From Octopus sinensis (lineage: Eukaryota): a DNA stretch of 64,000 nt. The DNA is taken from positions 105,061 through 169,060 of the forward strand of contig NW_021832601.1 of the NCBI RefSeq assembly GCF_006345805.1, given 5' to 3'. The notes beneath the pieces were generated by a model that was given only the letters and a program-made list of their open reading frames with translations, searched no databases and had not been told where the DNA came from. The position numbers were made by a program, and so were the translations under genes. Of this stretch, positions 1 to 44,650 are shown one piece after another (position 1 is the stretch's first letter; each line of letters begins with the position of its first letter).

Positions 1-430
1 CTTCGAATGGAATGCAGATGAAAACAGTCTTACAAGCGTACACCATCCTTTCACAATCCCCAATCCCAATGATTTCAAACTTCTCGAATCCAGCCCTCTA
101 AAAATACAATTACAAGCCTATCACATCATTATTAGTGGGTGGAAGATTTCAAAGAATTTCAGATTCTCTACCTCATTAAAAAATCTTTAAAGCACTTAAA
201 ATCAGTGAAGGGATCTAAAAAGAATGTTTAGTGTTTTTCTCAAAGCCCTTCAATATGGGACACTCTGCATCCTTGAGTCGCAATCAGCTTCGATAGACTC
301 ATCATGATTCTGACTAAAACAGCAAAAATATTCGTGATATCATCGTTTTCCCAAAAACGCAATTAATGATTCAGTGCTTTTCCTCTGTTATTCCTGGGAA
401 GCTCCATGAGCTCGAGCTAGAAACTGAGCC
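1..430 (+). pseudogene. aspS: Bacterial (chlamydial-type) aspartyl-tRNA synthetase, C-terminal remnant, copy 1 (runs off the window start)
   Basis: Frameshifted translation FEWNADENSLTSVHHPFT..AYHIIISGWKI..KALQYGT..FDRLIMILT..RDIIVFPKTQ..GKLHELEL follows bacterial AspRS (HHPFT; motif 3 GLDR; IRDVIAFPKT). No introns; many stops and indels. Confidence 0.9.
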
Positions 431-504
431 CAAAAAATTACTCGGATATAAATCGAGGATATTAAAGTTTAATTTTCAAGAGGATTTGATTAAGAGAAAT
501 CAAA

Positions 505-990
505 AGTATTTAACAAACTTACAAGTCACTTTCGAGTTTTATTTGTTAGGTCTTTTACACTTAGTTATGCTACTGTAACCCAATGAAGAGAGGCTCCGCA
601 GCCCAACAAGAGCCAAAGAAAGAGCAAGAAATCGATATTAATAAAGTCTCTAAAGCTTTCGGTCATTTAATTGGTAATAACCTCGAAACTTTGGGATTTG
701 AGTTAGATATCCAAAAAGTGATTTAAAGAATGAAAGACTTCCTCTGGAAGACTCTCCGAGTGTGTTCAAGCCACCTCAATTGTTCAGGAAGAAGCTTTTC
801 AAAACCCCGCGAGCAAAAACCTAACTCAAGCAAATGAATTACTTTCTACTAATGTTAGTCAAAAAGGAGTTATCAAACTTGAGAAACACAAACTCAATAC
901 CGCATTGAAAACGAGGAAAAGGCCTGCAAAATACAAAGTTCCAAGCGATGCAACTCTGCAATAGATTTTCCAAAGTGGTTAGGATAGCAG
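505..990 (+). pseudogene. mip: Chlamydial-type Mip (FKBP PPIase) 5' remnant, copy 1
   Basis: Signal-peptide-like start, then EIDINKVSKAFGHLIGNNLETLGFELDIQKVI*..EEAFQNPASKNLTQANELLSTNVSQKGVIKLEKHKL(QYRI). This resembles the Mip N-terminal dimerisation region of Chlamydiae (SEALGH..; ENLSLAEKFLKEN..KLQYKIIKEG). Lies directly after aspS; the FKBP domain is lost. Confidence 0.78.
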
Positions 991-17706: not shown

Positions 17707-20116
17707 TCATTTATTATTTATTCCAGCTATCTTGGACTGTGTCTCAAATACCAATAACCTCCACAATTTAATCACAAAAACTTCTGCCTCGTTATCAAAA
17801 ATCTATTAAATATCTCACAAAAAAAGCACCGTCCAAATATCTTTAACCAAACTTGTCGGAGATGTCTGAGATAAAAGCTTTTCACATATAAAGTCGTTCA
17901 AACTTGGTTCTTCCTCTCCGATATACTCAATAATCTTCTTATTTACCCAACTACGAATGCGAGTATCGACAAGATTCTTGGAAAATTAAAACTTTAAAAT
18001 ACCTGATCGACCACTGTCCAGTCAATTTCGACAGAAAACAATGATTCAGAATCAGTAGGTATCTTGTCAATAATTTGCCGAATCATCCTCTTCTTCTCCT
18101 CAGCAGAAATGTATTTGAAATGATCAGTCATATCCAATTTTGGTTTCACGACTTCTGGTTTTACTTCGGGGACTTCCTCCTCCTCTTCTTCGTCCTCTTC
18201 AAACACTTGAAATGTTGAAAGGACCGGAGTTGTCTTTGCATCCGACGGAACTTCAAAGCACGTGGCAACTGGGGCCGTCGTTGTCGTTTGCGCATCTTAA
18301 ATCACAAAAAATTAAATCCACTTAGTTTTAGAGCCGTAAAACCAATTTGTTTATCTTCAATAACTTCGGAAACTTCAGTAAATTGGACAATGTCCTCTTC
18401 CTCGTTGTTAGTTAGATCAACAGTTTCGCCAGGCTCTTCGTCTTCAGTTGTAGAAATGATTTCCTCTTCCACTTCTTTGTCTGTCAAATGTTTAAAAGCT
18501 CTCTTCTCGATCTTAAAATGTAGATCATTGGGGAAAACCTGTACTAAACGTTCTTCGACATGTTTTCCTCCTCGTTCAACCACACTTCTCCTCATATCTT
18601 CCACTTCAGCTAATTCCCTTTCTCTATCTCTCTTATCCCACTCAATCTCACGATCACGTGCATGTATTAGTCTTGCCAATTGACTTCCTCTGAAAATAGT
18701 CACAATACATATCCAACTTGTAATATTTTCCGTCGTCTCGATCGTCATTGTAAGACATTAGAAAGTCATATTTATGCTTGGTATCTTTCATCTATAAACG
18801 GAATGTTATGGCTAGAATACATTCGACTTATTCCTCTCTTCTATCCGCTCAGCCTCCTTTTCAAATTCTTTCTTCTTCTTCCGTTCTCTTGATTCCCAAT
18901 TCCGCAAACACTATCAGGATTGACCGGGTAAATATATACATTAATATACGAGTTTTCCTTTTCCTGGGCTTCCCTGTCCAACCGAGTTTGTTCTTCCTCA
19001 TCCTCAAGCTCACTGTTCGTAGTAATAAAAACAAAAAACCTTGAATTCCTTGACCTTTTAGACGCAGAACTCAATCCACAGTCATTGTCCTCCTAAATGG
19101 AAATATACAACAATTGTTAACGAGATGCTTGTCCAGGGAACACACGTCCTTTGCTTCCCTTGCGTCCTAGTAGTTTACAGTAGTTTGTCTACCTTTCTCA
19201 TATTTTTAATAGCGATTGGATCTCCTGCAAGTACACCAGCATATTCTACGAGGAGTGCGTCAAACTCTGCCTTCACGGCAGCCATTTCTGCATTCATTGG
19301 AGGCTTCGACTCAACTTTGGGAATGGGGACTCCGGGCATTTTGTGCCTCATGTAATCTTCCAAATGATTCCGACTTTTAGAATTCACTTTGACCTTAAAT
19401 GAGTATATCTAGACTACCAAAAGGGGTTTCCCCGCAATGACATATCCATTAAGAAGTCTGAGAGAACAAAGAGTAGACTCCGGGTGCTTGTAGTCACAAA
19501 ATGCAAAAGCTATTCAAAAATTTAGCACTAAACTCAATTACCTTGTAATTTACCAGCACTGGTATAAGTTCTCTTCCAATTAAGCACATTCCCACATTTC
19601 TAAAAATAAGATGAGTCAGCCAACCTCGGCCAATTGCCTAATAAGAGTATCTGGACAACATTCTGGAATGTTCCCAATAAAGACAGTAGTTGTAGTATAC
19701 GGAATTTCCTTGAATATGAAATAATGAAAACTACCTTTGGAACGGCGTACTGCATTGGTTGAGACATGACAACGCCGAAATTAGGAGAAGGAGTCATAAT
19801 TGGAGTTTGAACAACTGAAGGCTGAACTGGAGTAGGTATAAACGGTACTTGCATTGGCTACAATATAAACAATAGATCCCAACGTTTACTGGGGCAGGGA
19901 CTCCGTAGGGAAGGAAACCTAACAAATTGTTAGCCAACATTAGAAATTATAATCTATAAGTTATCTAAATATGAAAATCTAATGAAACCTGAAGATTAAA
20001 AGCTAAAATTCTACAAATTTATAATTCCTGATAGTTTATAATTATTATTAAGAATTACCGGTATTGTATGAAGATGTCATTTGAGGTACACACGGAATAC
20101 GATTAGGAAACGACAT
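17707..20116 (-). CDS. RBM25: RNA-binding protein 25 (Pro-rich N-terminus, RE-rich region, PWI domain), copy 2
   Basis: Starts MSFP. C-terminal EEKKRMIRQIIDKIPT..LFSVEIDW..IRSWVNKKIIEYIGEEEPSLNDFICEK..EAEVFVIKLWRLLVFET is the RBM25 PWI domain. Confidence 0.92.
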
Positions 20117-20504
20117 AACAATCACAAGAACAATACACAACACGATATTAATTTAAATTAATATTACTTTACAAAATTAATAATTTATTTATATTTTACT
20201 TATACGTATGATAGTAGTATAATAAAATTTTTAGTTACATTTTTGGAATCAAATATTTTTTTTAATAAATTAACAAGCACGTCGCAAATCCAGAGGCCCA
20301 TAGATGTCAGCCACACAAAAATTCAAAAGCAAGAAAGAGAACAAGCAAGCTAATCATTTTAATCAATTCTGAATTGAGACGTGAATAAGTGTGCAGCTGG
20401 TGAAAAATTTAAATTAAAATAAAATTAAAATTAATTCAATTTGATTTAATTTAAATGTTCTAAATTTATATGTTTTAAATTTAAATATACAAAATAAAAT
20501 TCAG

Positions 20505-20839
20505 ATGGTTAAAATCGAATTATATGGGTTGGTCATTATGTAAATATTTCATTAATTAGATCAGAAGAATGCGGAATTTTATTAGAGTTACAGGGTCAAG
20601 TCAAATTTGAGGATAAATGTAATTGTTATTTTTTTCTAGACAAAAATGTAAGTAATTTTTCTTCACTTTTAAAGGGTGTTCCTTACCTTGTAATGGGTCG
20701 TAAAATTTTAGTTGGACAAGCCAGTGAAGACGATATTAACATGGCTTTAATTTCTTGTGATTCCGGAAAAACACATTTTGTCGTAAAAAAGAAATTTATA
20801 TTCAAGGATAAACCAATACAAATACTAAAAAATAAGTGA
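20505..20839 (+). CDS. CHTF8: Chromosome transmission fidelity factor 8, 3 exons, copy 2
   Basis: Spliced product MVKIELYGSEECGILLELQGQV..GVPYLVMGRKILVG..KKKFIFKDKPIQI matches Ctf8 (LMELQG..GIPVLIVGHHILYG..KILFKTRP). Confidence 0.75.
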
Positions 20840-21049
20840 TCTATTAAATTTTGCTCTATTTTGTATTTTTTTTGGTGTAAAATTTCGTAGAAATAGTTTA
20901 TGTACCTAGGATGTTTTCATTGAGGATCGTGTGATATTAACGGATCAATGATTTAGAAAAATTTTAAACATTATTATGCTTTTCCTACTATTAGGGACAT
21001 TCTTATTCATTAGACTGTTTGTGATTCGGCGTGAATATGTGACCTAGTT

Positions 21050-21502
21050 ACGCCCCTGGGCTGTCCTTCTGTTTAGTAAATTGCACATCTGCCGAAAATA
21101 TGGGATAAAGCAGTCTAGGAAGTTAAAGATCCACTGCTTCAGTAGACTGTCTCTAATAAGATGGTCGAAATACGGGTGGACACGACGATAAAGACGGATA
21201 CTAAAGTCAATAATAATAAACCGGACATTTTTGTCTAAGACATCATTATGCTGATCAAAGTTGGGATTACTTCTCAACAATCTTTGAAGCATGTGGAAGT
21301 TGAGAAATTACATAAATACGACCTTTTGGGAAGCGAATTGAGGTTAATTCACAATGCAAATGTGAATTTCGTACCGTTGGTTCTCACATGGGATGGAATA
21401 ACATCCAAATTTTACAAGCAATACCAAAACTCTCTACAAGTCCATGACTCAACGCGTGCACATGTTCAGACAATCGTGATCAAAAAAACACTGGAGAGCA
21501 TG
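21050..21502 (+). mobile_element. Decayed RLE-endonuclease non-LTR retrotransposon fragment (same family as 50180-50963), copy 2
   Basis: HICRKYGIK..VEIRVDTTIKTD..NKPDIFV*..GITSQ..VEVEKLHKYDLLGSEL..VPLVLTWDG..KKTLESM. Joins the hisS remnant immediately after ESM. Confidence 0.85.
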
Positions 21503-22276
21503 CGCCCTGAGTACAAACTCTTACCTACAACGGCAAAACATGCAATCTGTTCGGATAGTCTTCCAGGGCTTTCGAGTGATGTTCTTATTTCCGGACGACA
21601 AACATCGATTATCAACAGGTATTAGAATATGACTACATCAAACCAGGTCGTTTTATATATCTTTAAAGAGCAAGCACTCCTCCTCGAAACTCCTACCATT
21701 CTCGACGAATTCTATGATGAGAGCCGCACACATTTTTATGGCCTTTGCCACCTCTTGAAGAAACAAAACATCCCCTTTAAGATCGAATCCAAACTCTTTC
21801 GCGGTCTTGACTGTTACAAACAAACCGTTTTGAAATCAGATCTGATGTTCTTGGTGCACAAAATACCATTGGTGCGGGAGGACGTTACAATGGGATTACA
21901 GTTATGCTCGGCGGCCCAGATTTTCCTAGTATTGAATATTCCACTGGTATCGAACTAATCTTACAAACAATAAATAGGCAAAATGCATTCCTTTTCGTCT
22001 GTCTCATTCCTTTTATAAAAAAAAGTTAAATCTGTATGTATTAAAGCACTGTATGAACTCCGACATGGAAAAAAACAGCTCAACTTACCTCTGCAAAAAA
22101 TATAAAAAGTCCCTCAAGCTGCTAGTGATCTGGGAACTACTTTTTCTCTCATCCTTGTAGATGAAGAGCATTCAAAAAGACTTGTCCAAGTTAAAAATAT
22201 GAAAACTCGAGACTCAATTGAAATTCAATTAGAAGAGCTCACTTCTGTCCTCTTAAAAAATAGGAATAACAAATGA
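21503..22276 (+). pseudogene. hisS: Bacterial (chlamydial-type) histidyl-tRNA synthetase, 3' two-thirds, copy 2
   Basis: ETPTILDEF..IPFKIESKLFRGLDCYK..TVFE..DVLGAQNTIGAGGRYNG..LGGPDFPSI..TGIE.ILQTI..VQVKNMKTRDS..KNRNNK* matches bacterial HisRS (LVRGLDYY, GGGRYDGL, anticodon domain VKNM). Frameshifted. Confidence 0.92.
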
Positions 22277-22317
22277 CCTTTGACTATAGAAGAACCACCT
22301 CTCTCACGTACTTAATA
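22273..22317 (+). pseudogene. aspS: aspS start codon and first codons, copy 2 (left of the Tc1 insertion)
   Basis: ATG ACC TTT GAC TAT AGA AGA ACC (MTFDYRRT-H) fits the AspRS N-terminal YRTH motif. ATG 22273-75 overlaps the hisS TGA at 22274-76. Confidence 0.8.
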
Positions 22318-22485
22318 CAGCGATACAAATAAAAAACGGAACACTCATTTTCTCGATTTTTTTTATTAAATGACTAGCTCGGCAGCTCGCTTCGCTCACC
22401 GCGACCTAGCTCCTGCGGAGGGCCTGTTTCATCAAACAACTATAAGTTTATGTATATGTATAAAACTACCTGGTTTAATGTAACC

Positions 22486-22917
22486 CTATTCTATCGCCTG
22501 TTGATAAACGATGTTTGTCGTCCGTCCTTCCGTGGCATATATGAATAAATTTTCTCTTCTGCCTACCCTCGAGCATCCCACATACAGCTGTCCATGTGAA
22601 AAGCACTCACTCTCTAAAAATAACCCAACTACCTTTAATGACTGTCCCTGGGCCTTGTTTATTGTCATTGCAAAACTCATCCTCAAAGGAAATTGCAGCC
22701 TTTTAAATCTAAATGGTAATTCATCAGAAATTATCGGAATTCGTGGAATATAAACATCCTCACCTCTATACTTACCTGTTAATATCGTCGCCTCTATTAC
22801 GTTAGGCATCAAATTTTTGAGAACTAACCCCGTTCCGTTGCATAATTTAGGTGGCGCAAGATTTCGTAATAAAACCACTGGAACGCCTATCTTTAACTTT
22901 AAAAGATGATTCGGCAT
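22486..22917 (-). pseudogene. Helitron PIF1-like helicase C-terminal remnant
   Basis: [62 protein letters not shown]. Confidence 0.92.
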
Positions 22918-23274
22918 TCCAGAGGGATCTAAGGAGTTTAAAAATTCAATCCGGTTGAATTTTTAGAAAATAACAAAAAAATAAAGAAAAACAAATAAAA
23001 ATAAATAATTTAAAAACAAAAAAATAAAAAAAACTTTAAAAATTTGTAAAATAGTATAAACAAAAAAAATCTCTGCCGCCACGGCAACAACCAGTCTAAT
23101 TTTTTAACAGCCAATTAAGATAATGTTTAAGAGCCTTTATAGTACGGAGATTTAGCTTAGTGACCTTGATTAGACAAACCACTGGCGGAAATGGGGCAGC
23201 CGGAGATGCGGCAGGCAGAGTAGCAGCAGCCAAAAAAGCGACACACAAAAAAGATTTAATTAATTACCTTAAGC

Positions 23275-24833
23275 CAGAGGTTTCCAAATGGGGAGGCGCG
23301 CCTCCCTAGGGAGGCGTTGACTCGTGTCAAGGGAGGCGCGAAAAGTATTTCAGAAACATTTTTTAGAAAATTATATCTATGTAAAAAACGTGACTATATT
23401 CCGATAATAAGAGTTATTAATTTAAAAATTATATTTTTTCAAAAATTTATTTAATTTATTAGACAATTAAATAATTTTAACACATGAATAAATTCTTGAG
23501 TGGTTGCAAAAGAAAATTCACGAATAATAAAGATTTTGACGATGGTTCAAAAAATCAAAATGATTGGAATATAATCAATACCACTCCAAAGACAAGAAAA
23601 TACTTTCCATCTTACTTATTGTTAGGATTCACACGTATCTTTGTTGATTCTATGGAAAAACCCCTCTGTTTGCTTTGCCTCAAAACACTTGCAGCAGATA
23701 GTATGAGGCCATGCAAATTAAGAAGACATTTTGAAACGATGCATTCTGAACATGTCCATAAGTCTGAAGAATTTTTTAAAAGAAAATTAGAAGAGTTTGA
23801 TAACCAAACGAAATCGTTAAAAAAACTTGTTTCTGTCTCTTCAAATGCTTTACTAGCATCGTACAAAGTTTCTTACAGGATTGCAAAATGCAAGAAACCG
23901 CACAATATCGGAGAAACTCTAGTTTTGCCAGCAGCTATCGATATGGTTGAAGCAATGTTTGGCGAATCCTATGCAAAACAATTACAGCAAATACCGCTTG
24001 CTGATAACACAGTCGCTAGAAGAATTGATGACATATCTGAAGATCTTTGTGATCAGTTGGTTTCTCGACTACGTAACTGTAAATTTGCTATACAAGTTGA
24101 TGAGGGAGCTGACATAAATAAAAATGCACATTTAATTGCATATGTCAGATATGCTGAAGAAAGTACAATAATAGAAGATCTATTATTCTGCAAACCATTT
24201 CCTGGAAGGAGCACGGCCAATGAAATTTTTAATATAATTGATACTTTTTTTGAAGAAAATAACATAGAATGGATCAATTGTGTTGGACTTTGTACAGACG
24301 GAGCACAGTCAATGTCAGGAAATAAATCTGGTCTTCAAGCTCTTGTAAAAAACAGAGCACCAGAAATTATCCGGACGCACTGCATGCTGCACAGATCAGC
24401 ACTTGTCTCAAAGAATATGAGTCCAGAACTGAACGATATTTTTGCGCAAATTACAAAAGTTATAAACTACATAAAACACAGTCGAAATTTGAACGGAATA
24501 TGAAATTTTGTCGAATAAAGCAATGAAAGTTTTGTTGCCATTTGCTACTTCATATTTATGCGAAACTGGATTTTCTGCACTAGCTGCAATTAAATCTAAA
24601 TATCGAACTCGTTTAGTAGTGACTAATGAGCTAAGAGTAGCACTCTCTGCGATGACACCAAGATTTGAAAAACTTTGCGCCAAGATGGAAAAAAAATTAT
24701 CTCATTAACTTTTTGTTTTAAAAAATTGTTTTTGATAAAATAATAATTGTATTATATTATGGAATATAAAGGGAGGCGCAAGATTGTACTTTTTCTCTAA
24801 GGGAGGCGCGTAAAAAAAGCTTGGAAACCTCTG
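23275..24833 (+). mobile_element. hAT (Buster/ZBED5-like) element, internally deleted transposase, nested in the Helitron
   Basis: TIRs CAGAGGTTTCCAA / TTGGAAACCTCTG, TSD CCTTAAGC at 23267-74 and 24834-41. ORF 23484-24503 has a BED finger, DE catalytic motif, CTDGA and HCMLHR. C-terminal FATSYLCETGFS..KYRTRL. Confidence 0.95.
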
Positions 24834-25061
24834 CCTTAAGCTGACCGTTTTTTCTTCAGCTTCGTTTTTCCTCCTTCGGTTATCTATTTAAAAAATTATT
24901 TTTCAATAATAAAAAAGTTTAGGAAAAGAGGCATACCGAAAATAAATTCTATCTTTACGAAAAACTTAACTAAATAGTTAATATTTTTACGCAAATTCTT
25001 CTGATTGCGCTGTCAATTGGTGGTAAATTGTGTTAATGATTGTGCTAATGTGGTTTTAACT

Positions 25062-26522
25062 AACAATATAATCCCCGCACTTTTTTCCCTTGGCCTGTCT
25101 ATAAACCCTTCGAAATCTGAGATTTTTAACATCTCTTATGATCCCAATTATTTTAACACATCTATCTATCCATTATTTAATTCGCTTCTCCCTAATATCA
25201 AGGCTGTTACATCCTCTGATCTTATTGTCCTTGGCTCCCCAATCTTTTCCTCGGCTATCCCTTCCTTCCTGGAGCTTAAGCTCACAAAAATACAAGAATC
25301 TATAGCCACACTTAAAACAGTCGACGCACATGCTGCCTTCTTCCTGATCAAAAATTTCCTTGCTTTCCCCCGGTTACAATTTTTCTTACAGTCCGCCCCT
25401 TGTCACCGCCATCATTGTGCTCTTCAGCACTTCGATCTTTTGCTAAGAAACTCAATTTCGGCTAATACTAATGTCAATTTTGATGATGCCGGGTGGCAAC
25501 AAGCGATCCTGCCAGTCCGTCACGGCGGACTAGGTCTGCAAGCTCCTTCTGTTTTGGCTCTCCCTTTCTACCTTTCTTCGTCATACCGCTGTAGTCCGCT
25601 TGTCCTTAGGATTCTTTCTCCCCATTCCGAATCCGTTCTGGACCAAGAGCTTTCTCATGGTATCGAAGTTTGGTCTTCCCGTGGCTTCGACATTCCTTGC
25701 TATCCCTGCTATACAAAGGCGTGGACGGAAACAATGTTTCTTCAGTTATACAATTCGCTATTATCCTCCTGTGATCAACACCGGCGCGCTTGTCTTTTGG
25801 CCGCATCCTCCGAATGGAGTGGCGCTTGGCTCAACGCATACCCTTCCGGAAATACGGGAACCCTGCTGGACCCAAAAAGTGTGCAGATTGGCATTTCTCT
25901 TAGACTTGGTCTGGACATCTGCTTTCCACACACTTGCCGCTGTGGTTCTGTCGTAGATCGGAAAGGTCTCCATCCACTTTCCTGTCGCAAAAGCCCTGGC
26001 CGGATTCCCAGGCATTCTGAATTAAATTCCGTAGTAAAACATGCACTTGAAGCAGCCGGATTTCCCTGTCAGCTGGAGCCTCCTGGCCTTCTAAGGGAGG
26101 ATGGTAAGAGACCTGACGGGGTCTCACTCTTTCCCTACAAGAACGGGAAAGCAATCGTCTGGGATGCGACATGCTCTGATACTTTCGCATCATCATGTCT
26201 TTCCTTGTCGGCGGTCGAGGCTGGCTCAGCAGCCAAGAGGGCGGAGACGAAGAAGGCATCTAAGTACGCCTCCCTGATGGACCGTTTCATCTTCGAACCG
26301 GTGTCAGTGGAAACTTCCGGTGTACTTGGCCCGTCTACTCTCCGTTTCCTCTCGAAGATCGGAAGGTCATTGGGAAGGCGAGGAACGACCCCCGTGAACT
26401 GATGTGGCTTTTTGAGCGCATCTCTCTCGCAGTTCTAAGGGGGAACTGTTCCTCGATCCTCCTCTCGGCTGCGGTTCCGCCTCTTAATTAGTGATTTCTT
26501 TACCTTATAAACTGTCATTTAA

Positions 26523-26558
<36 letters not shown>
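25062..26558 (+). mobile_element. 5'-truncated CRE-like RLE non-LTR retrotransposon with poly(A) tail, nested in the Helitron
   Basis: Open RT C-terminus (LGSPI, GGLGL), C-x-C..H..C knuckle, RHSELN, KRPDG..WDATC, 34-nt poly(A) at 26525-26558, short AACT duplication. Empty site visible in the 11095-11400 repeats. Confidence 0.92.
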
Positions 26559-26560
<2 letters not shown>

Positions 26561-26859
26561 ATCAAAGTGTTTTTCAAAATCTGTTAATTGCACACTCTAT
26601 TCAAGGTCGTGCAATCTGTAATTGCACATTCTGTCAAAGTCAAATATGATAATAGCTTTAATTTTGATTCATGGTCGATAATGATATATGCATTTAATTT
26701 TAAAGAGAAAATCATAGGATGAATTGAATTTCTTTATCGCGAATAATTGGGAGTTCATCATTGTTAATATTCTCGCTGTCGTTTTCATCAAGGATATTCT
26801 TAATACGTTAGATTTTTGCCTCGAAGGTTTTAATGGACCTCATTATGAATGTCGAGGAC

Positions 26860-27298
26860 ATTAACGTTGTTCATTTTAATCAAATGCAGAAAATAATTTT
26901 TTGATTTTTTGGCGGGAAGGTTTTAAGGACCTGATCATGTAAGTCGAGGACATCGTAGTTGTTCATTTTAACCAAAATGCAGAAAATTTTTTTTTAATTT
27001 TTTTTGGGGGGGAAGGTTTTAAGGACTTCATCATGTAAGTCGAGGACATTGTAGTTGTTCATTTTAACCAAAATGCAGAAAATTTTTTTTTAATTTTTTT
27101 TGGGGGGGAAGGTTTTAAGGACTTCATCATGTAAGTCGAGGACATTATAGTTGTTCATTTTAACCAAAATGCAGAAAATTTTTTTTTAATTTTTTTTGGG
27201 GGGGAAGGTTTTAAGTACCTCATCATGTAAGTCGAGGACATCGTATTGCCAATTTGAAGTTGGTGTGCACACACAGACAGACAGACAGACAGACAGAC
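26860..27298. repeat. About 98-bp tandem repeat array plus (CAGA)n microsatellite near the Helitron 5' end
   Basis: Repeated CATCATGTAAGTCGAGGACAT..GTTCATTTTAACCAAAATGCAGAAAA..GGGGGGAAGGTTTTAAG; CAGA repeats near 27273-27298. Confidence 0.88.
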
Positions 27299-27529
27299 AC
27301 ACACCATACCATTTTATTATTAAGATTGATTTATTTTAACAAAAATAGAATTTTTAGAAGACAAACATAACTTTAGCCTTTAAAAAAATAAAAACAACTT
27401 ATATTTCGGACCGTAGTTAAATCCAGTTTTGTCCAAACAAAATAAAAAAGAGAACAAAATAAAATTCTCTATTTTTACAGAGTTTTTTAAACCACTTTTT
27501 ATTTTATTACACGTGTTGATTCTTGTTAC

Positions 27530-28215
27530 ATGGTTTTACAACTTACATTACAAGAAAAAGCAGAAATTATTACGTATTATAAAGTCGGAAAGTCATATCG
27601 GGAAATAAGAAATTTGACCGGAAGATCTCTGAGTGCCATCTCGAGAGTCATTCGAAACTTCACCATGAATGATTCCTTCCAGAGAAAAAAAGGCTCAGGA
27701 CGAAGATTTAAACTTAACTCTGATGATCTCGGAATAATTCAACGTGAACAAAAGTTTGGAAAAGGGAACGTAATGGTTTGGGGCGCATTTACATCGAAAT
27801 GTTTTTCGGAACTTGTTTGGATAAAGGGAATTATGAATGGGAACTTATATGTAAGTATCTTGGCGGACTATTTGTTGCCTTTTTTGGAGAAAACCGGAAT
27901 CCGGTCTCCAATTTATCAGCAAGATAATGATCCAAAGCACACATGCAAGGTGGCTAAAGATTTTTTTGATGAACACCGAATTGAGTTATTACAATGGCTT
28001 CCTCAAAGTCCCGATTTGAATCCAATCGAGCACGTGTGGGCCTTCATGAAACATAAAATAAAAGGGACTGAATTTAAAAAAAAGAGTGACCTATTTGAGG
28101 AATTAAAAAATATTTGGAATGATCTTTCAATAGAATATGCGACATCCCTTGTTGAACAATGCGGAACAGAATTTTAGACGCAATTAATGCTCAGGGGGGT
28201 CATACTAAATTTTGA
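27530..28215 (+). pseudogene. Tc1 transposase, internally deleted
   Basis: HTH (GKSYREI..SRVI), VMVWGAF, YQQDNDPKHT, WLPQSPDLNPIEHVW (DD34E type), GGHTKF end after a frameshift. The first catalytic D region is deleted. Confidence 0.92.
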
Positions 28216-28412
28216 ACTACCATTGTTCTCTTTTTTATTTTGTTTGAAAAAAATTTGGTTTAAATACATATTAAAATCTTTGACGTTTGGATTTTTATAA
28301 AAGGCAAAAGTTAAGATTATAGCTTGAAATTCGATTTTTTATTAAAATAAATCAATCATTCAATAGAAAAAAATCGAGAAAATGAGTGTTCCGTTTTTTA
28401 TTTGTATCGCTG

Positions 28413-28889
28413 TAAATTCAATGTTGGATAGTCTGTTACTATTTCAGGTTGGATTCACTGCCGACGCGATCACGGTGGACTGTCTTTATTGACCCCCAAT
28501 CATCTCAAATTTTCACGTTGCTGATAATGCTATAATGCAAGGATCGCTAATTTCAAATCGCTCCTTGTTTTTGCAATAAAGATCTTCTTTCCGATCGTCA
28601 GCACGAGTTTATTCTGCTTGATTTAGAAATGAGTTTTTCAACTCCGAAACACTTTAAAAAATCATTCATTATTGCCTAAAAGTTTTTTTCAAAAAGTGCC
28701 TCGATGTTAAGGTGCCGGACACCATTTAAGAAATGACTCAAGCCGACTGTAGTGATATTATAAAATAGATCGTCCAATTGTCTCTTTTCCGCCTTGATGA
28801 AATTGCTAAAAAATGCAAGTTTCCTGTTTTTAAAGTGGAAGGAGACGGGATTGTTAAATGTATTTTTATCAAAGGTAGTGTATTTAAAG
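28413..28889 (+). pseudogene. aspS: aspS segment between the Tc1 and the hAT, copy 2
   Basis: VTISGWIHCRRDHGGLSFID, then a deletion to [32 protein letters not shown] (motif 2), then RLDEIAKKCKFPVF..IVKCIFIKG. Confidence 0.9.
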
Positions 28890-31122
28890 CAGGGGTCGGC
28901 AGGATTTTTGTCTTCGCGGGCCAAAATTTTATTTTTGTATGCGATCCGGGCCAAACGAGAAAAAATCCTTATCGGTCACAAAAATAAAGCAACGCTTGCA
29001 CATTGCGATCTTTCTTTATCAAGTTTTTTTTGCAACTTTCTTACGAAATAAAAATTTATCAGTTAAAAATGATTATAAAGAAGTGAATTTATTTTACTCA
29101 TTAATCTGACTAGTTGCTAAACGTAATATATCGTTAAGATGTGAATCGGTAATCCTCGTTCTCAGACAATTTTTTACATTATTCATTTTAGAGAATAACT
29201 GTTCACATAAAAATGTGCTTCCAAATATACAAGCCATTTTCATAGCATTGTCGGTTAATTGCGGATATTTTCTGACACATACAAAATTTTTGTAGAAGCT
29301 CAAAATATCCATTTCAGAAAAATATTTTGATTTAAGTGTACTGTCGCATTGAATTTCAAGTAATTCCATTTGATAACACCCTGGTACTGTCTCAGTTTCA
29401 ACATCAAATGGGATTGAAAAAATGTTGAAAAGATTTGTATGAGCCTAAAAAATTATATATGCGCATTTTACTCTTAAATCCATAAAACGTGATGAAAATT
29501 CTGATCTCAATTCCATAACTATGTTTGCATATTCTGGAACATCAGTCGGATTCGTAGAAAGAAAATTCACAAAATGCGTCATGTTTCCTTTTTGTAACTG
29601 TAATTCCCACAACTTCAATTTATTTTCAAAAGCAGTAATTTCGGCATACATTTGGTGTATAAATTTATTACTTCCCTGCAGTTTCAAATTTAAGTCATTT
29701 AGATGTGAAGTTATGTCTACAAAAAATGCCAATTTGGAAATATTATCAGTATTTCGGAAATATGAAGCATCATAATTCTTTTCTTCAAGAAAAATTATAA
29801 CATCTTCCCGTATATGAAAAAACCTTTTGAGCATTGATCCTCTACTAAGCCATCTGACATTACAAAAATATAAAAGATCCCCATATTCTGCTTCAGTGTC
29901 GATTAAAAATTGCCTGAAATGCCGATGATTCAAGCCGCGGGATAAAATAAAATTTACTGCATTAACAACAGCATCCATTGTCTCACGTAACCTGACTGAT
30001 TTGGCAACTAACGCCTCTTGATGAACAATACAGTGAATCTTAACCAAATTGTGCTCAATTCCAAATTTTTCCATTTCATTTTGGAGTAATGTAATAGTTC
30101 CCTTTTTGTTCCCAACCATAGATGGAGCCCCGTCTGTTGTAACTCCAACTAATTTTGAAAGTGGAAGATTTAATTCTGTTAAAAGTTGCATTAAATGCAA
30201 GAAAACGTCGGTTCCTGTCACTGTACCCATAATTGGAATAACTTTGACAAATTCTTCAAAAATTTGGTATGCTTCAGTTATCCCTCGAACAAATATGACA
30301 AGTTGAGAAATATCTCTTCTGTCAGTACTAGTATCCAATGCGATAGAAAAATATTTGAAATTCCCAAAAATGTTTTTTAAAGAGTTATTTAAATCGAATG
30401 ACATTTCTTCTACTCTTCTTGTTACCGTTCTTGGAGATAAACAGATAGATTCAAAAATGTTTCTTTTTGTAGGAAATAGATTTTCAGCTACTGCCATTAA
30501 GCATTGTTTTATAAATTCTCCGTCTGAAAATGGTTTCATTCGTTTCGCAATTATCTTTGAAATTTCGTAACTTGTACGTGGATATCATCTTTTTCACAAC
30601 TCAAATTATTAAAAAATGTTGTTTGCTTTTGGTAATTTTGTTCGAGTCTCTTAATTTCCTTTAAGCGAGATTCTCCTGTAAACTTGCTGAATTTTTCGTA
30701 ATGTCGAGTTTCATAATGTCGCTTGATGTTATAAAGTTTTTTGACAGCAACTTTTTCGAAACATATTAAGCATATACGTTTTCCATAATCCTCAATAAAG
30801 AAATATTCATGAGTCCAATCTGGATTAAACGTACGGGTTTGAAGATCTTTAGTTCTTTTCGAACAATTCGGAATTCAAATTCACCACACAAAATTATTAA
30901 CACGTTTATAAATTTATTTAATTTTTAATAATAGATAAAATGTATGTATAAATCTATATTACTAAAAGTCTAGTACTTTACTAAATTTGCCCGCGGGCCA
31001 TGTTAGTTGGAAAAATTTGTCGGCAGGCCAATTTCCCTTAGTATTATAAAATTTGTTCGCGGGCCATTTTTAAATCTTCCGGGTCCTAATTTGGCCCGCG
31101 GGCCGCGATTTGCCGACCCCTG
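28890..31122 (-). mobile_element. hAT (SPIN/GTF2IRD2-like) element inserted in aspS
   Basis: TIRs CAGGGGTCGGCA / TGCCGACCCCTG, TSD ATTTAAAG at 28882-89 and 31123-30, single ATTTAAAG in copy 3 near 44325. Transposase KPFSDGEFIKQC..ALDTSTD..TTDGAPSM..HCIVHQEAL..VRWLSRG..FGSTFLCEQLFS, frameshifted. Confidence 0.95.
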
Positions 31123-31816
31123 ATTTAAAGGTATTAACCGCTATAACTTTTTTGTCGGAAAGTTTTGTCTTGAAGGAGACGAGCAAATGGTCTGCAATCC
31201 AGCACAATAACTATTAAAAGACATTGAAACTTGTATGAATTCTGAAAGAGACCTTCTCATTTTTGCAGCGGTAGATGAAGCCACAGTCAACCAGGGAATG
31301 GAGCAACTCCGTCGCCTTGTTGCTCTGGAATGCAGCCTCATTGACTCCAATCGCTTTGAGTTTTTTTGGGTCGTTGACTTCTCTTTCTTCGAATGGAATG
31401 CAGATGAAAACAGTCTTACAAGCGTACACCATCCTTTCACAATCCCCAATCCCAATGATTTCAAACTTCTCGAATCCAGCCCTCTAAAAATACAATTACA
31501 AGCCTATCACATCATTATTAGTGGGTGGAAGATTTCAAAGAATTTCAGATTCTCTACCTCATTAAAAAATCTTTAAAGCACTTAAAATCAGTGAAGGGAT
31601 CTAAAAAGAATGTTTAGTGTTTTTCTCAAAGCCCTTCAATATGGGACACTCTGCATCCTTGAGTCGCAATCAGCTTCGATAGACTCATCATGATTCTGAC
31701 TAAAACAGCAAAAATATTCGTGATATCATCGTTTTCCCAAAAACGCAATTAATGATTCAGTGCTTTTCCTCTGTTATTCCTGGGAAGCTCCATGAGCTCG
31801 AGCTAGAAACTGAGCC
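31123..31816 (+). pseudogene. aspS: aspS 3' segment, copy 2
   Basis: GINRYNFFVGKF..FAAVDEATVNQGMEQLRRLVA..EFFWVVDF..HHPFT... The VNQ-x-x-x-LRR-x-x-A stretch matches chlamydial AspRS ANQSLDHLRRLIA as recalled. Confidence 0.9.
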
Positions 31817-31890
31817 CAAAAAATTACTCGGATATAAATCGAGGATATTAAAGTTTAATTTTCAAGAGGATTTGATTAAGAGAAATCAAA

Positions 31891-32376
31891 AGTATTTAAC
31901 AAACTTACAAGTCACTTTCGAGTTTTATTTGTTAGGTCTTTTACACTTAGTTATGCTACTGTAACCCAATGAAGAGAGGCTCCGCAGCCCAACAAGAGCC
32001 AAAGAAAGAGCAAGAAATCGATATTAATAAAGTCTCTAAAGCTTTCGGTCATTTAATTGGTAATAACCTCGAAACTTTGGGATTTGAGTTAGATATCCAA
32101 AAAGTGATTTAAAGAATGAAAGACTTCCTCTGGAAGACTCTCCGAGTGTGTTCAAGCCACCTCAATTGTTCAGGAAGAAGCTTTTCAAAACCCCGCGAGC
32201 AAAAACCTAACTCAAGCAAATGAATTACTTTCTACTAATGTTAGTCAAAAAGGAGTTATCAAACTTGAGAAACACAAACTCAATACCGCATTGAAAACGA
32301 GGAAAAGGCCTGCAAAATACAAAGTTCCAAGCGATGCAACTCTGCAATAGATTTTCCAAAGTGGTTAGGATAGCAG
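31891..32376 (+). pseudogene. mip: mip 5' remnant, copy 2
   Basis: Near-identical to 505-990 (offset 31386). Confidence 0.78.
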
Positions 32377-32385
32377 TTTTTTTCT

Positions 32386-33182
32386 TTATAAAAACACCTG
32401 AAATTTTAGTCTAATCTAAGAAGTCAAAGCAACAGTTGGAGCTTGTACTAACGAGTCTTCTGATAAGTTGATGTTAAAAAGATTAAGATAGCCGATTTTA
32501 GTCATAGATAGTGTCTCCATACTATTTAACGATAAGATGGTAACATAGGCTTGGCAATTTTTTTATTACAAAATTAAAAGAGACCACCTGATAAACAACC
32601 TGATTACGAAGTCGACAACATAGGAAGTACTTTCTTCCTGTATTGAGAAAGTGACTTCTGCTAGTTGCAATGATCTTTAACAGGAGGAATCTGAAAAGTA
32701 AAAACACTTAAGTATCCTTCAATCGAACGATCTTGGCGAAAATGAATTCTAGAAGAACTCCTTTATGTGCTGAAGTAGGAAGATAAGAGAGCTTTGCCAT
32801 CTGAATTGCGAATTGCTGTATGTTGCTAAGGTTCTTTTCTGTGACAATTAATAAAGACAAGGGGGAGTAAAACGAGTAGCCATTTTATTTGTGTGAAGAA
32901 GAATTTCCGTGCTTTACTGTATTATTTCCTGATACAAAAAGCCCAATAATTACGGCAGATGCAGTTCCAATCATAACAGCAGCGGCTGTCTTAATATAGG
33001 CATAGCCATCTTTAACTAAAATAGCTTGAAGAATGCGAATTTTGCCCCCTTATATTTTTAGTATCGATTCGGAGAAAGTGAGAATTTTTACTTTCGATCT
33101 GAATGATCGATATAGGTTTTTTCATCGCATGGGATTTTTTTAATTGAGGGGCTAATCACAGAGGTAAAGATTTTACGTTCGG
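32386..33182 (-). pseudogene. Bacterial-like ORF remnants, partial copy 2
   Basis: Duplicate of about 1000-1797; breaks off at 33182. Confidence 0.5.
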
Positions 33183-33430
33183 TTACCTACCCCACATCTA
33201 CAAGAAGAAAAACTAGGCCACAGCAACCTTTTGTTCCCTAAGGAATCTGCACTTGGATCCGAAGGCCTTACACTAGAGAAAGAGACACAGGAATACATTC
33301 AGTCCTACCTGAAATGAACCCGGGTCAGAGGACTATATATACAAAGCAATAAAGAATTTAATTTCCCTCAATTGCTTCCAGGACGTATCTTAGAAGAGAT
33401 CGGCCGTCATCAACAACTATTTTGCAATTT
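33183..33430 (+). mobile_element. Possible Helitron Rep/helicase-linker remnant at the copy 2/copy 3 junction
   Basis: Frameshifted GLPTP..QEYIQSY-PEMNPGQRTIY.AI resembles the stretch just upstream of the Helitron helicase Walker A (LN.EQR.IY). Confidence 0.4.
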
Positions 33431-33529
33431 TATCGTCTAGTTAATCATCTCAACGTTTTCGCTGCTTTATTATTAGCACTTTCTAAGAACCAAAAGTAAT
33501 TTATTTAATTGATTTTGTTTATGCGTGCC

Positions 33530-33760
33530 ACAGAACGAGTTATTCACTTCTAAACAGAAATAGTTTTCCATTGCTATGTTGACAGGTGGCATCTGGCTTA
33601 TTTGAAGGAGTGACCAAGTAGATGCCATCTTGATTCAATGATACCCAGGCTCAATGGTCTTGCATTACATATTTTGTATAGATTTTTGTTTGACATTTTA
33701 TTTGGCCAGTTAATGCCAAGCAACAGTCAGAGCTTTTCTACAGTAAACCAAAACTGACTT
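33530..33760 (-). mobile_element. Degenerate LINE (RTE-like) RT C-terminal remnant
   Basis: LYKICNARPLSLGIIESRWHLLGH..PVNIAMENYF resembles the RW.LFGH..PA..AM..YF tail of RTE-type ORFs. Confidence 0.55.
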
Positions 33761-34254
33761 AATAGTGTTTTTTAACATTGTTCTAGATTTTTGTAGATAT
33801 ATAAAAAAATAAGATTCATCATCGATCGAATGTAGAAGAGAGGACGGTATCTCACTGGTCCTAAACGACTCGGCCAAAGGCCGGAGGGGTAAGCTTTATT
33901 CGTGAATATGTTTTTCAATTGTCTTATTTCCGCAAGTTCTCTAATTAAGACTCTCAGCTCTCGTATTTTTCTAATTGATCTATCTTTTTTAGACCAAATT
34001 GAACAGGAGTAAACACAAATATCTAATCTAACTTATAAAAATAAACTTGTTTAGCATACAATTCAAATTTTAAAAAGTTCAAAGAAGTTTCCTAAAATTG
34101 ATTATGATATTTTCTGACAGCTATTTTCTAGTTTTTGTAGATATCGATTGTCTTAAGAATATGCACGAGAATCAAGAATTTCCTTGAATAATAAACATAT
34201 GCAAAAATGATGCGGAAAAATCTTAAAATTCATCTAAAATCCATTCATCTAATT

Positions 34255-34758
34255 CAGCGTTTCCCAACCTTTTTGTGCTCGCGGTATCTAAAACTAGGTT
34301 TTTTTTCTCCCGGCACTTAAAAAATCAATATCCATTAGAAATGTTTTTTTAATTAATATATTCAAGCAACTTAACAAAAAATTACCAAAAGTAATTATAA
34401 TAACTGAGACACTTGTGCTTATTTATATGCACACAAAATTTCCAGACGGGAACGAATTTGCGACAAACATACGCGGAGGTCATCTTCAACTGATAACAAT
34501 ATTCTCAGATATGTCTTGTAGACGGCGACTGATAGTATTGTTCGATAATGGAATCTTATTAATCTGTTTGGTTGCTTCCTCCTCAAGAATTTTACTAACA
34601 ATAATTTTGCAGGCGGGTAATATCAATTTTTCTCCAATAGTGTGATTCTTACGGTTTAAAATATTATTATACAACTATAAATAATTTTCAATTTTAAATA
34701 TTAAAGATCTTGCGGCACCTAAAACCAGACCTCGCGGCACCCCGGTTGAGAATCGCTG
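34255..34758 (-). mobile_element. Non-autonomous hAT, copy 3 of 12661-13159
   Basis: Same TIRs and ATCTAATT TSD, so it predates the duplication. Confidence 0.9.
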
Positions 34759-35432
34759 ATCTAATTAGTCAGCTACAAAATTGCTATAGTCTATTCGAGA
34801 ACGATTTTATTTCTGAAATTACATATACTTGATTATTGACGGCCAATATTAAAATCTGTGAATCAGATTTGTGAAAAGCCTTTTTATTATCATTTCACCC
34901 CATGATAACTAATAGACTGAGTGATCACTACAAAAAAAACATTCACAACTAAGTAATCACAGACTTGTATGAGATGATTCGTGTCTTGCGGGAGCGACGG
35001 TTCAGTACTGCCCTTATCATAGGGAATCGTAAGGTTCGTCTGTTTGACTGTTTTGAAGTATTCAGAGAAAATTTTCAATAAAGGCTTACAATAGAGTTAG
35101 ATCTCTGACGAATTTTTTCTGCTTGTCAATATTCAGATCATCTATGGTGGTTGATTAAAAGCAATAGTAGTGAGAAACCTTTTCCGTGCATTCAAATGAA
35201 TCTTATCAAAATTTTATTCATAGACAAGTCTATAGACGTTTCTATGGAGTTTTTGATTTCAAATGTTATTTCCTTGGGCCTAAATTTTTAAATCATTTAA
35301 CTTTTTGTGGTTGTGCATGTCTAGGCATTTAGCACCGCATAAAAATATAATTTTATATTATGAATTGTTTAGTTTATACAATTGAAATATAATAATTAAA
35401 AACATAATTGAGTAATTAATATCTATCTAGGT

Positions 35433-35971: not shown

Positions 35972-36452
35972 TGAATTTGTAAAGAAATTAACTTTTTAAT
36001 TGTTTCAAGATGTAAACTGATCTTTATGTTCTCCATATATTTATAATTTCAAATAAATAACTTTCATTTTGATAAGTTCTACACATTAGTATTTACGCAT
36101 TTTAGGGTACTTTTTAGATTATAAAACAATGATTATTGCAACTAAAACTATATTCAATAGGAGATGTATTGCTTTTATTGTCATCGTCTCTATAGTTGAT
36201 CTTTTTACTGCCCTACATTGTTTTTCTGAAAATGTTTTAAATGAATACAGTTCAGATTAATACATATTCCGTGATATATATCTTTCTCAAGGTTGAACTT
36301 AAAAAAGTTTGTTTTGTTGCTAAAAAAACTTAACAAATAAAACTCGAAATTATCAGTTTATGAACAACTCTTGTAATTTACGTTTAAATTTGACGTGATA
36401 TTAATTTTTTAGATTTTTAATTAAAGAGTTAAAATTTGTAATAGTTAAAATA

Positions 36453-43102: not shown

Positions 43103-43817
43103 AGCCCTGAGTACAATCTCCAGGGCTTTCGAGTGATGTTCTTATTTCCGGACGACAAACATCGATTATCAAAAGGCATTAGAATATGACACATCAAACC
43201 AGGTCGTTTTATATATCTTTAAAGAGCAAGCACTCCTCCTCGAAACTCCTACCATTCTCGACGAATTCGATGATGGGAGCCGCACCCATTTTTATGGCCT
43301 TTGCCACCTCTTGAAGAAACAAAACATCCCCTTTAAGATCGAATCCAAGCTCTTTCGCGGTCTTGACTGTTACAAACGAACCGTTTTTGAAATCAGATAT
43401 GATGTTCTTGGTGCACAAAATACCATTGGTGCGGGAGGACGTTACAATGGGATTACCCAGATTTTCCTAGTATTGAATATTCCACTGGTATCGAACTAAT
43501 CTTACAAACAATAAATAGGCAAAATGCATTCCTTTTCGTCTGTCTCATTCCTTTTATAGAAAAAGTTAAATCTGTATGTATTAAAGCACTGTATGAACTC
43601 CGACATGGAAAAACAACAGCTCAACTTACCTCTGCAAAAAATATAAAAAGCCCCTCAAGCTGCTAGTGATCTGGGAACTACTTTTTCTGTCATCCTTGTA
43701 GATGAAGAGCATTCAAAAAGACTTGTCCAAGTTAAAAATATGAAAACTCGAGACTCAATTAAAATTCAATTAGAAGAGCTCATTTCTGTCCTCTTAAAAA
43801 ATAGGAATAACAAATTA
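43103..43817 (+). pseudogene. hisS: hisS remnant, copy 3
   Basis: KLFRGLDCYKRTVFEIRYDVLGAQNTIGAGGRYNG is in one frame here. Its indels differ from those in copy 2. Confidence 0.92.
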
Positions 43818-44650
43818 CCTTTGACTATAGAAGAACCCACCGCTCTCACGTATATAATAGATTCAATGTTGGATAGTCTGTTACTATTTCAGGTTGGATT
43901 CACTGCCGACGCGATCACGGTGGACTGTCTTTATTGACCCCCGATCATCTCAAATTTTCACGTTGCTGATAATGCTATAATGCAAGGATCGCTAATTTCA
44001 AATCGCTCCTTGTTTTTGCAGTAAAGATCTCCTTTCCGATCTTCAGCACGAGTTTACTCAGCTTGATTTAGAAATGAGTTTTTCAACTCTGAAACACTTT
44101 AAAAAATCATTCATTATTACCTAAAAGTTTTTTCAAAAAGTGCCTCGATGTCAAGGTGCCGGACACCATTTAAGAAATGACTCAAGCCGACTGTAGTGAT
44201 ATTATAAAATAGATCGTCCAATTGTCTCTTTTCCGCCTTGATGAAATTGCTAAAAAATGCAAGTTTCCTGTTTTTAAAGTGGAAGGAGACGGGATTGTTA
44301 AATGTATTTTTATCAAAGGTAGTGTATTTAAAGGTATTAACCGCTATAACTTTTTTGTCGGAGAGTTTTGTCTTGAAGGAGACGAGCAAATGACCTGCAA
44401 TCCAGCATTGTAAAATTCTTTGCACAATAACTATTAAAAGACATTAAAACTTGTATGAATTCTGAAAGAGACCTTCTCCTTTTTGCAGCGATAGATGAAG
44501 CCACAGTCAACCAGGGAATGGAGCAACTCCGTCGCCTTGTTGCTTTGAAATGCAGCCTCATTGACTCCAATCGCTTTGAGTTTTTTTGGGTCGTTGACTT
44601 CTCTTTCTTCGAATGGAATGCAGATGAAAACAGTCTTACAAGCGTACACC
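43814..44650 (+). pseudogene. aspS: aspS remnant, copy 3, transposon-free but 3'-deleted
   Basis: Continuous FDYRRTH..GWIHCRRDHGG..motif 2..SLTSVH, then a deletion of about 1.3 kb joining (via TT) to the equivalent of position ~1355, which removes the aspS end and mip. Confidence 0.9.

Follow-up and report, generated by a model that had tools for sequence, protein, structure and literature searches.

Results

Structure of the bacterial fragment

The window analyzed here is a 64,000-nucleotide stretch of contig NW_021832601.1 (assembly GCF_006345805.1, positions 105,061 to 169,060 of the forward strand), with an average guanine plus cytosine (GC) content of ~32%. Self-comparison shows one bacterial fragment in three copies, consisting of the 3' half of hisS, aspS, and the 5' half of mip. 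An earlier note on this DNA had described intronless and frameshifted remnants of the encoded proteins, HisRS, AspRS, and Mip, in that order on one strand. The remnants were mapped by translation and by a self-written frame-aware alignment of chlamydial proteins to the DNA, and both approaches agreed with that description. Bacterial coordinates are given on L082, a 108-kb contig with 41% GC from Joint Genome Institute (JGI) metagenome 3300018080, which is credited to D. Valentine's project (PMC7449369). Neither this metagenome nor 3300023220 was found linked to an environment in the literature searched; both may be Salton Sea sediments.

Copy 1 of the bacterial DNA runs from ~21660 to ~32301 instead of from 21503 to 32376 as previously proposed, and 8.3 kb of its 10.6-kb span is transposon sequence (22318-28412 and 28890-31122). 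The hisS remnant (21660..22276, + strand) lacks the 5' half of the gene and contains one stop and four frameshifts; by blastn, it matches L082 5371-6046 at 86.3% identity. Frame-aware alignment placed HisRS residues 221-430 of 430 at 21665-22273 with 78% amino-acid identity, and this C-terminal half spans motif 3 and the anticodon-binding domain. The hisS TGA (22274-22276) overlaps the aspS ATG (22273-22275) as ATGA, exactly as had been noted, and the junction is nearly identical to that of L082.

In copy 1, aspS lies in three pieces on the + strand. The first (22273..22317) encodes MTFDYRRT, in which 8/8 residues match. The second (28413..28889) encodes AspRS residues 16-38 followed by 200-334, with four stops and three frameshifts, and matches L082 6045-6126 at 89% and 6597-7002 at 82.8% (blastn). 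A 471-bp deletion corresponds to L082 6127-6596; its junction is at 28493/28494 in copy 1 and at 43938/43939 in copy 2. The third piece (31123..31844) encodes AspRS residues ~341-596 with three stops and four frameshifts, is covered by a match to L082 7020-8273 at 83.5% (blastn), and contains a 113-aa open reading frame (ORF) at 31235-31576. Overall, AspRS residues 1-8, 16-38, 200-334, and 377-593 were aligned at 22273-22296, 28414-28482, 28494-28876, and 31202-31826, respectively.

The mip remnant of copy 1 (31892..32301, + strand) encodes residues 1-143 of 266, which comprise the signal/lipobox region and part of FKBP_N, with two stops and three frameshifts. Its identity to L082 Mip is 53% over 139 aa by tblastn (E = 2e-28) and 79% after frame correction. 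No Pfam match was obtained for the FKBP_C half, and L082 similarity breaks off at ~32300. The motifs quoted earlier as chlamydial (MTFDYRRT, VNQGMEQLRRLVA, TGIELILQT, and KVSKAFGHLIGNNLE) were found in the translations.

Copy 2 is compact. Its hisS remnant (43216..43817, + strand) has the same truncation point as copy 1, carries two private frameshifts, and is 95% identical to copy 1; HisRS was aligned at 43221-43814, and blastn matched L082 5371-6126 at 84.8%. The aspS remnant (43814..44650, + strand) has a mutated start codon (ATT) and the 471-bp deletion, and both transposon sites are empty. AspRS residues 1-44 and 200-453 were aligned at 43814-44649; the remnant ends at residue 453, where it is joined directly to a block of host sequence (block X) at 44653. 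Copy 0 (1..915, + strand) is cut by the start of the window and retains the 3' end of aspS (1 to ~458, with AspRS residues 440-593 at 2-440) and a mip remnant (506-915); it matches L082 7317-8273 at 85.2% (blastn).

The window showed no trace of spoU, of the 5' half of hisS, or of the gene that lies upstream of hisS, and Rfam and tRNA scans of the window gave no matches. Pfam matches on X-masked frames were weak (tRNA-synt_2, 2.8e-10; HGTP_anticodon, 1e-3), and Mip had none.

Relationship to Chlamydiota

L082 covers the whole insert in blastn pieces of 82-1256 bp at 82-89% nucleotide identity (L082 5371-6126 = window 43220-43938; 6597-7360 = 43938-44650; 7020-8273 = 31126-32297). Proteins of L082 searched against the window with tblastn gave E values of 8e-51 to 5e-57 for HisRS, 2e-51 and 4e-68 for AspRS, and 2e-28 for Mip. 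Two other chlamydial contigs, L001 and L002, reached only 63-74% nucleotide identity to the window. The gene order in L082 is hisS-aspS-mip-spoU-DUF2905-trxA-tpk-plsC-cmk-cdsA-uppS, and its hisS and aspS also overlap by ATGA. The donor was very close to the L082 organism and nearly the L082 lineage itself. Because it follows from the nucleotide match, the donor call is independent of the trees described below.

Protein searches gave the same donor. An exhaustive HMMER scan of the unmodified 113-aa ORF against 1.84 billion representatives returned P0001 at the top (58% identity, 2.7e-28), with the next match at 45%, while a word-indexed protein search with the same raw ORF gave no matches. P0001 is encoded on metagenome contig L001, where it is followed by mip (FKBP_N and FKBP_C), spoU, DUF2905, and trxA. 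With a frame-corrected AspRS query, the best match was P0271, encoded on L082 (64% identity, 6e-149); the named matches began with Simkania sp. (57%) and S. negevensis (56%). Among the best 120 matches to this query, all named ones were Chlamydiota except for one metagenome-assembled genome (MAG) labeled Verrucomicrobia. As a separate observation, P0001 is chimeric, with a plsC-type acyltransferase N-terminus and an AspRS C-terminus (L001:5573-6400); the plsC segment recurs inverted at the end of the contig (L001:8997-9500). The chimera is due either to misassembly or to a genuine rearrangement by which aspS was broken in that chlamydia.

An AspRS alignment was also used to scan one genome per species, and 80 loci were sampled among the 600 matches listed. 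The ranking began with a Simkaniaceae MAG (51%), Candidatus Acheromyda pituitae (Rhabdochlamydiaceae; 49%), and a Rhabdochlamydiaceae MAG (46%); further bacteria from the Planctomycetes-Verrucomicrobia-Chlamydiae (PVC) group and then Firmicutes and others followed at lower ranks. Adjacency of hisS and aspS was common among the 80 loci, and the order hisS-aspS-mip was present only in L002, L003, L004, L005, and L027 (Waddlia). The hisS/aspS overlap is 11 nt in L002 and 8 nt in L004. Two of the sampled loci have doubtful labels. L005 is labeled "uncultured Verrucomicrobiae", has the chlamydial hisS-aspS-mip synteny, and groups inside Rhabdochlamydiaceae, so its label is probably wrong; L022 ("uncultured bacterium") groups with Chlamydiota and is probably mislabeled.

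Neighbor-joining (NJ) trees were built from Kimura distances with 200 bootstraps (AspRS: 397 columns, 78 taxa). The window was sister to the Simkaniaceae MAG L002 in 198/200 replicates for AspRS and 199/200 for HisRS, and its sister group was chlamydial in every replicate. The earlier note had proposed trees for all three proteins; HisRS and AspRS are chlamydial by NJ, and Mip was compared piecewise, with the best identities to L082 (53-62%) and L001 (53%). Nucleotide identity, protein searches, and trees thus bear out the chlamydial donor named in that note, and its guess of an environmental lineage holds, the family being Simkaniaceae.

Decayed host genes for mitochondrial synthetases (DARS2 and HARS2) would be another source of synthetase-like fragments. 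In a PDB search, the AspRS piece was identified as bacterial-type AspRS (5e-16), and human mitochondrial AspRS also matched it at 1.6e-12. A host origin would not account for the ATGA by which hisS and aspS overlap in the manner of an operon, nor for the chlamydial mip directly downstream. It also conflicts with the 82-89% nucleotide identity to a bacterial contig, with the ~99% bootstrap value for chlamydial placement, and with the absence of introns from the remnants, given that the host genes have many. Of the alternatives considered, we regard this one as the least probable, and the fragment is of bacterial origin.

Pattern of substitution

Between the window and L082, used as a proxy for the donor, 244/2243 sites differ. 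The differences are spread over codon positions 1/2/3 as 12.8/9.9/10.0% (chi-square p = 0.13). In the control comparison of L082 with its live relatives L001 and L002, the corresponding values were 17-21/9-13/50%. Equal frequencies at the three codon positions, as opposed to ~50% third-position change among live chlamydiae, indicate that nearly all of the divergence is neutral and arose after transfer.

Changes from GC to AT outnumber those from AT to GC by ~4:1, with C>T at 12.5% per C/G site and T>C at 2.6% per T/A site. GC content is 35-38% in the insert, 41% in L082, and 31-33% in the host flanks. Hypermutation of the repeat-induced point mutation (RIP), APOBEC, or CpG type was considered as the cause and rejected, since C>T frequencies are 9.5-14.4% in every dinucleotide context; the lack of a context effect indicates ordinary AT-biased mutation and not a hypermutation defence.

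A domesticated bacterial gene is expected to retain an intact reading frame and purifying selection. Each gene remnant in the window has 2-13 stops or frameshifts, the genes at both ends are truncated, and substitutions are equally frequent at all three codon positions. Eukaryotic signals are also missing, and the insert has never been functional in its host.

Transposons within aspS

Two eukaryotic transposons interrupt aspS in copy 1. The first (22318..28412) is a Tc1/mariner-like composite of 6095 bp; its terminal inverted repeats are 46 bp long (CAGCGATACAAATAAAAAACGG...), and TA is duplicated at its target site. Pfam matches were DDE_3 (3.5e-12), HTH_38 (5e-6), and Pif1_2B (4e-10), and this element therefore has the TA duplication, inverted repeats, and DDE transposase by which Tc1/mariner transposons are recognized. 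Its target site is empty in copy 2 at 43858-43859. The second (28890..31122) is a hAT-like transposon of 2233 bp that ends in inverted repeats of 12 bp (CAGGGGTCGGCA) and is flanked by a target-site duplication of 8 bp (ATTTAAAG); the corresponding site in copy 2 is empty at 44326-44333. It contains a 364-aa ORF (29445-30539, - strand) with no Pfam match, which we take to resemble hAT transposases, and the hAT call is based on this presumed likeness together with the 8-bp duplication.

These insertions bear on whether the bacterial DNA is a contaminant, with reads of a live chlamydia mis-joined to host contigs. Chlamydiae are often sequenced together with invertebrates such as Xenoturbella, where one chlamydial candidate for horizontal gene transfer was traced to a bacterial contig (PMC11521371). 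DNA from a live bacterium would hardly show 6-13 stops or frameshifts per copy over three genes, a 471-bp deletion, substitutions without codon-position structure, and two eukaryotic transposons with target-site duplications within aspS. The left breakpoint and the deletion are also repeated in copies 1 and 2 beside host DNA, and the right end is repeated in copies 0 and 1. Filled sites with target-site duplications, empty sister sites, and shared lesions together exclude contamination for practical purposes, and we consider it very improbable. At the level of the assembly, the earlier proposal of integration in an animal nuclear genome stands on the same transposons, shared breakpoints, and decay.

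The interior of the composite is itself mixed. It contains a Pif1/Helitron fragment (22486-22917, - strand), a hAT-like ORF (23484-24503), a 465-aa ORF (25005-26402) that has no Pfam match and presumably resembles a retroelement protein, tandem repeats (26557-27248), and the DDE_3 transposase ORF (27530-28177). Staggered self-BLAST matches mark tandem repeats with a period of ~96 bp at 26557-27248 and 10707-11150. Host blocks X and Y are separated by a spacer (10707-12205) that repeats the composite interior in inverted, internally deleted form and matches it at 27000-26557, 25066-24850, 23271-23184, and 22674-22379. This inverted copy implies that the composite is a repeated family or has been partly duplicated. 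The window as a whole contains Tc1/mariner, hAT-like, Helitron, and retroelement sequences.

Duplicated layout

Along the window, copy 0 is followed by host blocks X and Y, copy 1, a remnant of X, a second Y, copy 2, a second X, and unique DNA. Self-matches pair 1-1796 with 31387-33182 (99.4%), 1354-6401 with 44653-49730 (98.5%), 7080-10706 with 51098-54735, 12205-21520 with 33799-43120 (99.55%), 21562-22317 with 43119-43859 (95%), 28413-28889 with 43858-44333 (97.7%), and 31123-31430 with 44326-44650 (92%). Between copy 0 and copy 1 there are no substitutions over 1-1200. The segment 31431-32739 is absent from copy 2 alone. The spacer of unit 2 (33183-33798) contains a diverged piece resembling an ABHD-like exon of block X (NSFCGTHKQNQ vs NSFCGKHSYQN), so unit 2 retains a degenerate and largely deleted block X.

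Copies 1 and 2 have in common the hisS truncation point, the 471-bp deletion, at least four aspS stops, and two frameshifts. The shared stops in copy 2 and copy 1 are 43874 = 28429, 43978 = 28533, 43993 = 28548, and 44171 = 28727. Lesions common to both copies mean that decay was under way before duplication. Each copy has private lesions as well, such as different hisS frameshifts.

Divergence between the units is a mosaic, with many kilobases at 0.0% beside patches at 1.4-4.7%; the bacterial remnants lie in divergent patches, and the insert differs by 1-5% between copies. One reading of this pattern is that only one or two copies are real, and that allelic haplotypes, one with the two transposons and the other lacking them but bearing the 1.3-kb deletion, were placed in series by the assembler to give the three-copy layout, in which case the insert would still be real. 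A mosaic with 0.0% divergence in 1-1200 and in many kilobases of block Y, next to 2-5% in the insert and some flanks, would suit allelic haplotypes, and alleles typically differ in whether they carry transposons or a deletion. Set against this, the order copy 0, X, Y, copy 1, degenerate x' (32740-33798), Y, copy 2, X gives each copy different neighbors on its two sides and departs from the simple A-B-B'-C pattern of haplotigs, and gene conversion yields the same mosaic. We consider serial haplotypes unlikely, although they keep considerably more weight than the other alternatives.

Insert borders

In copies 1 and 2 alike, the bacterial DNA begins at one and the same position, right beside a retroelement ORF tail, and there is no L082 similarity upstream of ~21660. 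The tail (21248..21625, + strand) had no Pfam match; it resembles the 241-aa ORF of a paralogue at 50187-50912 and what we take to be retroelement C-terminal domains. At the right end, copies 0 and 1 lose L082 similarity at an identical base. Between this point and the host sequence common to all three copies lies a stretch of ~440 bp with no recognizable origin (32302-32740 = 916-1353). Neither an FKBP_C nor a SpoU signal was obtained from it, and copy 2 lacks it.

Host genes

Host block X carries an ASNS gene on the - strand, mapped by tblastn exons at 5100-3286 and 48407-46596. The exons have no in-frame stops in the standard code, and the three introns that were read are GT-AG introns of 29, 33, and 26 nt. 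Animal ASNS proteins make up all of the best 120 matches (43-55% identity); those of molluscs, a brachiopod, a nemertean, an annelid, and crinoids rank highest, and no match above 55% identity was found in the protein collections searched. Seven ORFs of the window were also looked up by exact sequence and had no match. An ASNS gene of this kind with GT-AG introns indicates that the flank is animal nuclear DNA.

The neighbors named in the earlier note, CHTF8 and ABHD11/ASNS, fared unevenly. ASNS was confirmed; the ABHD-like exon in block X, which carries GHSMG, had a weak match (Abhydrolase_1, E = 0.003); and CHTF8 had no Pfam or PDB match. The CHTF8 call reflects a presumed likeness to the human protein, which Pfam and PDB did not confirm.

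Our guess for the recipient is a dicyemid-like animal. This is based on the spiralian-leaning ASNS matches and on the lack of a close myxobolid match, with myxobolid proteins assumed to be represented in NCBI. On the same assumption for their proteins, Placozoa, myxobolids, and orthonectids were judged unlikely, as none gave a close ASNS match. In a 2026 survey, the only animals with introns shorter than ~30 nt were myxobolid myxozoans and Dicyema japonicum (PMC13644364), and the recipient may thus be a member of such a lineage or similar to one. The D. japonicum genome has 36.7% GC and 49% repeats (PMC6736024). Xenoturbella bocki, which hosts a Simkaniaceae chlamydia, was rejected as recipient because its GC content is 43% and that of the window is ~32% (PMC11521371).

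A protist host of chlamydiae, such as an amoeba or a ciliate whose introns are very short, would be a different kind of recipient. Chlamydiae are common in protists, and few animals have introns of 26-33 nt (PMC13644364). The ASNS matches contradict this, since the best 120 are all animal with spiralians at the top, as do the absence of in-frame stops from the ASNS exons in the standard code and the presence of transposon types that are common in animals. A protist recipient is therefore improbable, and an animal is the preferred host.

A metagenome scan with ASNS gave only low-GC contigs (L083-L088; 25-34% GC, up to 130 kb). Their ASNS genes are intronless, and the products have 41-43% identity to the host ASNS along with its C-terminal motif YQWMPKWC. 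Three of the six are from the JGI project of L082 (Ga0180433 and Ga0180432). None of them is the host; giant viruses or protists are possible sources.

Discussion

We consider it about 90% probable that the locus is a ~3-kb piece of a Simkaniaceae (Chlamydiota) chromosome that was integrated in the AT-rich nuclear genome of an animal, and thus a fossil lateral DNA transfer. Integration would probably have occurred by end-joining of bacterial DNA set free in an infected germ-line cell. The preserved stretch reaches from mid-hisS through aspS to mid-mip, which is ~2.9 kb in L082 coordinates. After integration, the insert evolved neutrally, acquiring ~11% substitutions, a shift from GC to AT toward host composition, the 471-bp aspS deletion, stops, and frameshifts. 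Part of this decay would have come first; the locus and ~10-20 kb of flanking host DNA would then have been duplicated to give the at least three copies in the assembly. Tc1/mariner-like and hAT-like transposons would have entered one copy after duplication, and in another copy a 1.3-kb deletion would have removed the 3' end of aspS and mip.

Several points weigh against this reconstruction. All of the evidence comes from one assembled sequence, and the junctions and the copy number are known at the level of the assembly. The mosaic divergence between units fits gene conversion in a true tandem array and, equally, two haplotypes stitched in tandem by the assembler. The trees are distance-based and drawn from the sample of 80 loci, and the window rows in them were extracted with a chlamydial guide protein, which introduces a slight bias toward the guide. 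Finally, third-position change on the bacterial side since transfer is nearly absent, which needs a host neutral rate several-fold higher than the chlamydial synonymous rate; such a difference is plausible.

Chlamydial relatives of the insert keep the same gene block. L082, L002, L003, L004, and L027 have hisS-aspS-mip(-spoU-trxA), and the window agrees with them in order, strand, the AspRS start M(T)FDYRRTH, and the N-terminal motif of Mip. It differs from them in having lost the 5' half of hisS, 471 bp within aspS, and the part of mip that encodes FKBP_C, and in its many stops and frameshifts. We take hisS-aspS-mip to correspond to CT543-CT541 of C. trachomatis.

Heritable bacterial inserts in animals are, to our knowledge, almost only derived from symbionts transmitted through the germ line, such as Wolbachia. 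Chlamydiota have a very wide range of animal hosts, and we do not know of them as germ-line residents. Nuclear inserts of Wolbachia in arthropods and nematodes resemble the present case in comprising several genes, in keeping the gene order of the donor, and in residing in an animal chromosome; they are likewise mostly non-functional, decay neutrally, and are later duplicated and invaded by host transposons (PMC3798261; for Drosophila ananassae, PMC4558871). Unlike these inserts, the window has a donor from Chlamydiota (Simkaniaceae) and not an alphaproteobacterium known for transovarial transmission. The insert is also only ~2.9 kb long, and its host seems to be a non-arthropod animal with ultra-short introns.

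Chlamydial sequences have been connected with eukaryotic genomes before. The Trichoplax adhaerens genome project yielded a lateral gene transfer candidate of chlamydial origin, rsmE, and an fkpA-trmH (mip-spoU) fusion in trace reads (PMC3641634); among the literature searched, this comes closest as a precedent. That case is similar in having a chlamydial donor and an animal recipient, and fkpA-trmH is from the same chromosomal neighborhood (mip-spoU). The Trichoplax candidates are intact coding sequences; integration of fkpA-trmH was not shown, and the authors doubted that chlamydiae were present. By comparison, the DNA in the window is integrated, it is a pseudogenized operon fragment, and a close living relative of the donor has been identified. 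Chlamydial genes of Archaeplastida, such as those of vitamin K metabolism, also passed from Chlamydiota to a eukaryotic nucleus (PMC6189191), but they are ancient, functional, intron-bearing, and under selection, whereas the fragment in the window is comparatively recent, dead, and in an animal.

Full-text literature searches brought up no report of a chlamydial operon fragment integrated in an animal, which is not proof of novelty. Tentatively, and with slightly more doubt than belief, the locus could be the first part of a chlamydial chromosome that is clearly integrated and vertically inherited in a metazoan, here one with introns of 26-33 nt and perhaps a dicyemid-like parasite, with a donor lineage that persists almost unchanged as L082 in a public metagenome from sediment. 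The locus stands out by its donor phylum, which is unusual where the recipient is an animal, by the living relative that has been identified, and by its odd host.

For annotation, the locus is a caution that Chlamydia-like matches in invertebrate assemblies are not always contamination. As a molecular clock, it records ~11% neutral change in the host, and it indicates which bacterium to seek there. This divergence and the nested transposons point indirectly to long vertical residence. An operon fragment within a chromosome is physical evidence that Simkaniaceae DNA reached germ-line nuclei, and infection of the germ line would be the likely route. If this reading is true, a Simkaniaceae bacterium had, and may still have, germ-line access in this animal, and the insert would serve as a dated molecular marker of their association.

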